Positions 11,312 through 11,410 of a DNA stretch of 64,000 nucleotides are shown piece after piece (positions within the stretch are counted from its first letter, which is position 1; every line of letters begins with the position of its first letter). The notes beneath the pieces were generated by a model, which searched no databases, was not told the DNA's origin, and saw nothing but the letters and a program-made list of their open reading frames with translations. The stretch comes from Orbicella franksi (lineage: Eukaryota): NCBI GenBank assembly GCA_964199315.1, contig OZ116707.1, positions 17,856,001 through 17,920,000 on the forward strand, read 5' to 3'. The position numbers and the translations under genes were made by a program.

Positions 11312-11410
11312 CTAGAGTTCGCTATGTCGCGACATCGAATCAGTAAGACTCCTTCTTCTCCTTCTGTTGTTTGGGAAAGTGATCACAAATCGATTCTTGT
11401 CCACAGAGCT
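11312..11410 (-). CDS. Terminal exon: [32 protein letters not shown]
   Basis: Acceptor ttttttacag at 11411-11420, phase 0 matching the previous exon, 99 nt ending in TAG at 11312-11314. Confidence 0.75.
   Translation of the reverse strand, partial: SSVDKNRFVITFPNNRRRRRSLTDSMSRHSEL

Follow-up and report, generated by a model that had tools for sequence, protein, structure and literature searches.

The window, the whole 64,000-nt stretch of Orbicella franksi DNA analyzed in this study, carries a mega-thrombospondin (mega-TSP) gene on the minus strand, which is colinear with coral mega-TSPs. In a tblastn search, P0178 of Oculina patagonica (2584 aa) aligned colinearly with 45 segments of the window, from position 63759 down to 11315. 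The alignment covered residues 600–2584 of P0178 with a mean identity of 76%, and the second Oculina paralogue gave 59%. About 600 codons at the 5′ end of the gene, among them those of the signal peptide, fall beyond the window; according to the literature, all mega-TSPs have a signal peptide.

Known mega-TSPs consist of an LRR region, a cadherin/PA14 centre, EGF, TSP type 3 repeats, TSP_C, another ConA-like domain, and a brief terminal sequence, in this order (PMC6526912). TSP_C (PF05735) was matched by two window exons with E-values of 1e-19 and 8e-17, up to position 198 of the 198 profile positions, and TSP_3 was matched by window exons with E-values of 4e-8 and 1.5e-6. EGF_CA and Ephrin_rec_like were also matched in Pfam. 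A single window exon gave only a weak match to Laminin_G_3 (E 0.07), and single LRR and cadherin exons fell below the Pfam thresholds; the orthologues have precomputed LRR_8 and Cadherin matches. Since the single-exon matches are weak or absent for LamG, LRR, and cadherin, these domain calls rest on the orthologue and on colinearity. The last 480 residues of P0178 (2105–2584) contain, in order, TSP_C (residues 46–242 of this part), Laminin_G_3 (251–396; E 7.5e-18), an extension of ~65 residues, and the tail. The window exons that encode the second ConA-like domain were 73–94% identical to the Oculina sequence, except for the weaker match at 13416–13601 (45%). TSP type 3 repeats followed by TSP_C, and a second ConA-like/LamG domain after TSP_C, were thus both found. 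The first-pass annotation had contrasted this gene with canonical TSPs, which end just after TSP_C. Because the gene is a mega-TSP, this comparison was the wrong one: the second ConA-like domain and the terminal sequence after TSP_C have already been described for mega-TSPs, and their end was termed "nonconserved" (Shoemark et al. 2019, PMC6526912).

Other features were found within this gene. PA14 or "fibro-slime"-like exons at 42212–44857 (minus strand), each below the Pfam thresholds when taken singly, occupy its central part, in agreement with the PA14 domain reported for a Hydra mega-TSP. Long plus-strand open frames at 21874–22487 and 49547–50627, located in mega-TSP introns, contain motifs resembling those of tyrosine-recombinase (Crypton/DIRS-like) transposon proteins and are probably transposon remnants. 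Upstream of the penultimate exon, the intron contains a tandem repeat with a 94-bp unit (12443–12701; 2.8 copies, 95% identity). The 164 consecutive N at 46704–46867 mark an assembly gap or masked sequence.

Table 1 Features of the mega-TSP gene in the window.
Feature	Position	Strand	Evidence or remark
3′ UTR, minimum extent	11002–11311	−	X4 contig 11002–11339, X2 contig 11089–11410
Stop codon TAG	11312–11314	−	Sequence read
C-terminal tetrapeptide H-S-E-L, KDEL-like	11315–11326	−	Orthologues: HxEL, KSEL, or REEL
Variable spacer SLTDSMSR	11327–11350	−	P1′ = Ser and P2′ = Leu relative to the proposed cleavage site
Polybasic run RRRRR, R-X-[KR]-R convertase consensus	11351–11365	−	Orthologues: 4–9 R/K in the same place
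Conserved anchor closing the folded C-terminal region; exon start 11410	11366–11410	−	RNA joint and conservation
Last intron, GT..AG	11411–12202	−	RNA joint; zero polyA depth at 11740–12171
SINE body in last intron	~11421–11732		Flanked by 12-nt target duplication TTTTTTACAGAG, 11409–11420 and 11733–11744
Penultimate exon, 65 codons	12203–12397	−	Contigs 12234–12397; tblastn
Second ConA-like (Laminin_G_3) exons: ~16653–16748, 15893–16030, 15212–15313, 13416–13601	13416–16748	−	tblastn of P0178
TSP_C exons: 19855–20049, 18387–18650, 17438–17605	17438–20049	−	Pfam PF05735 and tblastn
Upstream exons: TSP_3, EGF_CA, ephrin-receptor-like, cadherin-like, PA14-like, and LRR regions	20595–63759	−	tblastn, Pfam

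Terminal exon and gene copies

The arginine run followed by the KDEL-like HSEL is the real C-terminus of this coral mega-TSP, as read on the minus strand. The terminal exon (11410–11315, minus strand) is preceded by the acceptor ttttttacag at 11420–11411 and encodes 32 residues before the TAG; the span 11312–11368 given in the first-pass annotation corresponds to 18 residues and the stop. The terminal exon and the upstream exon (12397–12203) are both in phase 0, and the donor of the latter is gtatgc. In run X24, 15 raw polyA RNA-seq reads, starting at 13 different points, carried the joint 12203/11410 (GT..AG, minus strand); X2 and X4, which bear two different species labels, contributed a single contig each. 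The depth in X24 was ~25 in the last exon and ~29 in the penultimate one, and the intron sequence between them had a depth of 0 outside the repeat. A loose read end at 12397 fits the next upstream exon, 13416–13601. No alternative joint from donor 12203 was found in two raw polyA runs and two RNA contig sets on 10300–12440. The joint 12203/11410 was thus seen in three runs and no different last exon was observed, so that the claimed ending, an arginine run and HSEL before the stop, stands as a spliced reading of the minus strand. The RNA depth in the 3′ UTR dropped below about position 11236. Public RNA runs contained ~0.3–0.46 of the words sampled from 11150–12410, which is roughly the exonic share of this stretch.

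A variant was observed within the tetrapeptide codons. The change 11322 C>T, which converts HSEL to HNEL, was present in 10 of 21 X24 reads and in the single X22 read (1/1), and it occurred in linkage with changes in the UTR (11307 and 11309). Its source is a divergent allele, a copy, or a sister species. HNEL is a canonical variant of the retrieval signal, and the Stylophora orthologue likewise ends in HNEL.

The SINE in the last intron duplicated its 12-nt target TTTTTTACAGAG, and the splice acceptor was duplicated with it. If the upstream acceptor were used, with a cut after 11735, the protein would end in ...LVS-S-stop and lack the last 31 residues. No read showed a joint at the duplicated acceptor 11735, which would produce this tail-less isoform, compared with 15 reads at the canonical joint. 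The SINE body had enormous depth with heterogeneous flanks in the RNA contig sets, indicating that it is expressed from many loci.

Two further mega-TSP 3′ ends were found in this genome, and all three, including that of the window, retain the tail module. One, a near-identical copy (L002; G000:C10:17980971-17984168), is located ~114 kb from the window copy, and its penultimate exon is 100% identical to that of the window. Its last intron has no SINE, and the nearly invariant Pro of its anchor is replaced by Arg. L002 represents a recent tandem duplication or else a haplotype that was left uncollapsed, and RNA reads with 11404 C>A (Val to Leu) may derive from it. The other (L003; G000:C10:18614602-18617796, plus strand) is the 3′ end of a mega-TSP paralogue 0.7 Mb away, with a penultimate exon 71% identical to that of the window, and its tail fits the type of the second paralogue of Oculina, Acropora, and Porites.

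Conservation and loss of the C-terminal tail

Orthologues were collected by HMMER with the TSP_C exon and by three word-seeded searches in which C-terminal regions of mega-TSPs from starfish, mussel, and hydrozoan sources served as queries, and names were added through cluster look-ups. These searches gave ~55 mega-TSPs, 40 of which have the tail. The tailed sequences come from Scleractinia (two of Oculina, several of Acropora, Montipora, Porites, and Stylophora), the octocoral Dendronephthya, hydrozoans (Clytia and two more), all five echinoderm classes, two hemichordates, amphioxus (two paralogues), and the brachiopod Lingula. Ctenophores, sponges, placozoans, tunicates (Ciona), Nematostella, Exaiptasia, and Hydra do not appear in the sample by name. 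The orthologue sequences are mostly automated gene models; nevertheless, a single exon encodes both the conserved anchor and the tail, and the latter is therefore the genome-encoded sequence up to the first stop.

All 40 tailed sequences share one layout, consisting of an anchor, 4–9 Arg/Lys residues, a spacer of 2–13 aa, and a C-terminal [H/K/R]xEL. The anchor follows the pattern [ST][VL]D.xRF...[YFH]P.[NAS] and is conserved in all phyla sampled; in alignment A1, its Ser is invariant, and its Phe and Pro are nearly invariant. The basic run is followed by a small polar residue and then by a mostly aliphatic one. A regex tally of 38 sequences counted HSEL 17 times, HEEL six times, HTEL four times, HGEL three times, HREL twice, and HNEL, HMEL, HAEL, HQEL, KSEL, and REEL once each; HEEL is also the ending of P0040 and P0168, two more sequences from amphioxus. 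Across the 40 tails, position −4 is H, K, or R, position −3 is free but never Pro, and Glu at −2 and Leu at −1 are invariant. Among the 283 proteins fetched, the [HKR]xEL ending was found in these 40, all of them mega-TSPs with a basic run, and in none of the other 243. The conservation across Anthozoa that was predicted for the combination RxxR...xxEL-stop thus holds, and it extends to Hydrozoa, Echinodermata, Hemichordata, Cephalochordata, and Brachiopoda. Neither the length nor the sequence of the spacer is conserved among the orthologues. That the spacer is randomized while its flanking elements are not indicates that both elements are under selection rather than merely inherited. The last 17 residues are best read as a selected two-part module, in which a candidate RRRRR/SL site is followed by a short linker ending in HSEL-COOH.

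Bivalve mega-TSPs and both of those of the annelid Owenia stop at the basic run. Those of Mytilus (three sequences), Potamilus, and Sinanodonta end in ...YPNN, ...YPDN, ...YPTN, or ...HPEN, those of Mercenaria, Ruditapes, and Dreissena in ...YPNNRR or ...YPNNKR, and the two Owenia paralogues in ...NNRR and ...PNNF. In the genomic DNA of Mytilus edulis, Mercenaria, and Owenia, a true stop follows straight after NN or NNRR, and no [HKR]xEL-ending ORF was found within 6 kb downstream. We also considered whether the ...NNRR-stop endings arose by read-through of an unrecognized AG/GTAAGT donor. This was rejected because the stops lie in CGT TAA CTC and AGA TAG CAC, with no donor.

The intron before the last exon has the same position in the coral, Mytilus edulis, Mercenaria, and Owenia, indicating that it is ancient. 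It is a phase-0 intron preceding the final S-x-x-D/Q...RF...YPNN exon, located at 11410/12203 in the window and at ~84530, ~54500, and ~63770 in loci L004, L009, and L010, respectively. Lingula, also a lophotrochozoan, retains the full tail. Therefore, the module is ancestral to cnidarians and bilaterians and was lost in some lineages. Each loss removes both elements at the predicted cut point, as expected if the mature protein normally ends there. Since bivalves and Owenia lack the tail, it is dispensable for the core function of the protein.

Proposed role of the tail and comparison with known systems

The sequence RRRRR/SL fits the convertase consensus R-X-[K/R]-R and lies in a segment predicted to be flexible. 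Among 29 distinct tails, P1′ was Ser in 18, Asp in eight, and Asn, Gly, and His in one each, and P2′ was Val in 12, Leu in nine, Ala in six, and Ile in two, so that 23 of the 29 have Val, Leu, or Ile at P2′. A small or polar P1′ and an aliphatic P2′ after a basic run are as expected of furin substrates. At least 12 convertase P-domains (PF01483) are encoded in the genome. For the C-terminus of the Oculina protein, AlphaFold2 gave a model with a mean pLDDT of 83.7 from a 39-sequence alignment. The segment VDKNRFVIT before the tail was modeled as a moderately confident helix, and pLDDT was below 50 for residues 463–480, from the last anchor Asn and the basic run to the end; the model thus predicts that the tail is disordered.

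For the tetrapeptide, we used the code derived from the ER localization of reporters, in which −4 can effectively be H, K, or R among other residues, −3 is any residue but proline, −2 is strongly Glu, and −1 is Leu or Phe (Raykhel 2007, PMC2140024). In the same study, AHAEL, AHTEL, and AHEEL equalled AKDEL on KDELR1, and KDELR2 preferred HXEL. The HSEL-stop and all 40 orthologue tails agree with this experimentally derived code, which is that of the reporter assays and not one derived from cnidarian or echinoderm KDEL receptors. HSEL does not match the strict PROSITE pattern PS00014, [KRHQSA]-[DENQ]-E-L, because Ser at −3 is not in [DENQ]; HTEL, HGEL, and HAEL are likewise outside it, and HEEL, HNEL, HQEL, and REEL match. 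A fungal toxin proposed to act through the nematode KDEL receptor depends on HSEL for its activity, and a KDEL receptor gene is present in the coral genome (PF00810, 97.5 bits). As the variation tolerated in the tails matches the Raykhel code, the tetrapeptide is likely a ligand of the KDEL-receptor type, as the first-pass annotation had suggested. An arginine-based RXR retention signal, a nuclear localization signal, and a GPI signal were rejected on the basis of luminal topology and the non-hydrophobic tail.

We consider it rather probable, judging from the sequences compared here, that the tail is an ER-retrieval tag removable by convertases. A mega-TSP of roughly 2,600–2,800 residues, disulphide-rich and calcium-binding, would enter the ER, and molecules arriving at the cis-Golgi would be caught by the KDEL receptor via HxEL and sent back, lengthening the stay in the ER. 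Those that get as far as the trans-Golgi or beyond would meet convertases and be cut after the arginine run. Carboxypeptidases would trim the leftover arginines, and the mature matrix protein would end in ...FPNN and no longer be retrievable. This proposal of the first-pass annotation gains support from the last exon, the conservation of the tail, the fit to the receptor code, and the bivalve and annelid proteins that end at the proposed cut point. We infer the actual binding, cleavage, compartments, and physiological purpose, and the link to the folding of calcium-binding repeats, to ER calcium, or to one-way secretion is speculation. Intuitively, a matrix protein would not be expected to carry an efficient retrieval signal, which counts against this reading.

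The tail could instead belong to a protein that resides mainly in the ER or early secretory pathway, with HxEL serving plain retention, the arginine run serving as a linker or as a contact site for sulphated glycans or acidic partners, for example, and any cleavage being incidental. The conservation of HxEL is equally compatible with plain retention and with a removable tag, and canonical thrombospondin-4 reportedly has an intracellular, ATF6-linked role. Basic runs of 6–9 residues go beyond the convertase minimum, and those of up to nine arginines, which may have another role, count against the removable tag itself. We nevertheless regard residence in the ER as improbable. In every tail, the basic run separates the folded domain from HxEL and has furin-like P1′ and P2′ residues after it, the tail-less lineages lost both elements together and exactly at the run, and mega-TSP is regarded as a matrix protein in published work on its expression and knock-down.

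Another alternative is that the tail is a propeptide released by convertases, with HxEL acting outside the ER, for example by engaging cell-surface KDEL receptors or another C-terminus-binding partner, or with the exposed C-terminal arginines being functional. The polybasic site is conserved, and the KDEL-like proteins MANF and CRELD2 occur in the ER as well as in secreted form, as this alternative would allow. However, the last four residues show exactly the conservation of ER retrieval, and the lineages that end in ...YPNN have no terminal arginines. A bioactive peptide is also unlikely since the spacer is conserved in neither length nor sequence. This makes a released propeptide with a role outside the ER quite unlikely. 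The notion that the tail is chance or neutral sequence, or a gene-model artefact caused by a wrong last exon or exonization of the SINE, can draw on the shortness of the motifs and on the SINE directly upstream of the exon, but it is very nearly untenable given the RNA joints in three runs, the 40/40 versus 0/243 distribution of the ending, and the conservation of the exon and intron position in coral, mussel, clam, and annelid. A SINE-derived exon was specifically rejected because the exon is conserved across phyla and because L002, which has the same exon, has no SINE.

If the tail is indeed a removable retrieval tag, it would be a natural case of the "cleavable retention tag" logic otherwise engineered by synthetic biologists, and it would explain how a cell could regulate how long a very large calcium-binding protein stays in the ER or how much of it is stockpiled. 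C-terminally tagged constructs of these proteins would then mislocalize. A transferable tail of 17–32 residues would also provide a handle on whether an ER phase is ancestral to thrombospondins. A further-reaching version, which we hold to be possible but unlikely, is that the module is an ancient built-in secretion switch of the cnidarian–bilaterian ancestor, in which HxEL and the KDEL receptor would hold a folded ER pool and convertases would release it irreversibly. Such a switch would allow matrix to be delivered rapidly, with no need for new synthesis, upon wounding, during regeneration, or when ER calcium is lost or the receptor is saturated, and the ER-resident phase, seen later in thrombospondin-4/ATF6, would be ancestral to the thrombospondin superfamily.

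As judged from colinearity with the orthologue, the window gene and the mega-TSPs described previously (PMC6526912) share the same domain order, and what is added here is that two short terminal motifs are conserved across phyla. In that paper, "KDEL" and "furin" occur zero times each. No description of the tail module on any protein of the thrombospondin superfamily was found in the searchable literature; the extension itself was known, and the motif in it was not. A KDEL-like signal and a furin site are each textbook matter, and it is their conserved pairing at the end of a matrix protein family that appears to be unreported. This pairing has been retained since before the cnidarian/bilaterian split, and it was cleanly deleted in some lineages.

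The tetrapeptide has the same extreme C-terminal position and follows the same residue rule as the KDEL/HDEL signals of soluble ER residents (PROSITE PS00014; PMC2140024). In contrast to those residents, its carrier is a giant matrix-type protein rather than a chaperone or enzyme, and a conserved candidate convertase site precedes the signal. Fibrillin-1, the source of asprosin, and peroxidasin have a polybasic site after the last folded domain, and their C-terminal piece is removed late or outside the cell; their propeptides are not known to have a KDEL-like end, whereas the piece that would be removed from mega-TSP has 6–17 residues, of which only HxEL is conserved. In the KDEL-tailed cysteine endopeptidases of plants and in Pseudomonas exotoxin A (REDLK), C-terminal proteolysis switches a KDEL-type signal, but the kingdoms, proteases, and purposes differ, and neither an animal matrix protein nor a furin-type site is known to be involved. 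MANF (RTDL) and CRELD2 (REDL) lead a dual ER/extracellular life with a sub-optimal or regulated tail and are released on ER stress or calcium loss; their signal is not known to be cut off, unlike what is proposed for mega-TSP. The same logic is found in lumER/membER, in which an engineered, pre-made KDEL-held protein is released when a protease removes the tag (bioRxiv 10.1101/2021.10.19.464966). This system is synthetic and uses an ER-targeted designer protease, and the mega-TSP module would be its natural counterpart with endogenous convertases.
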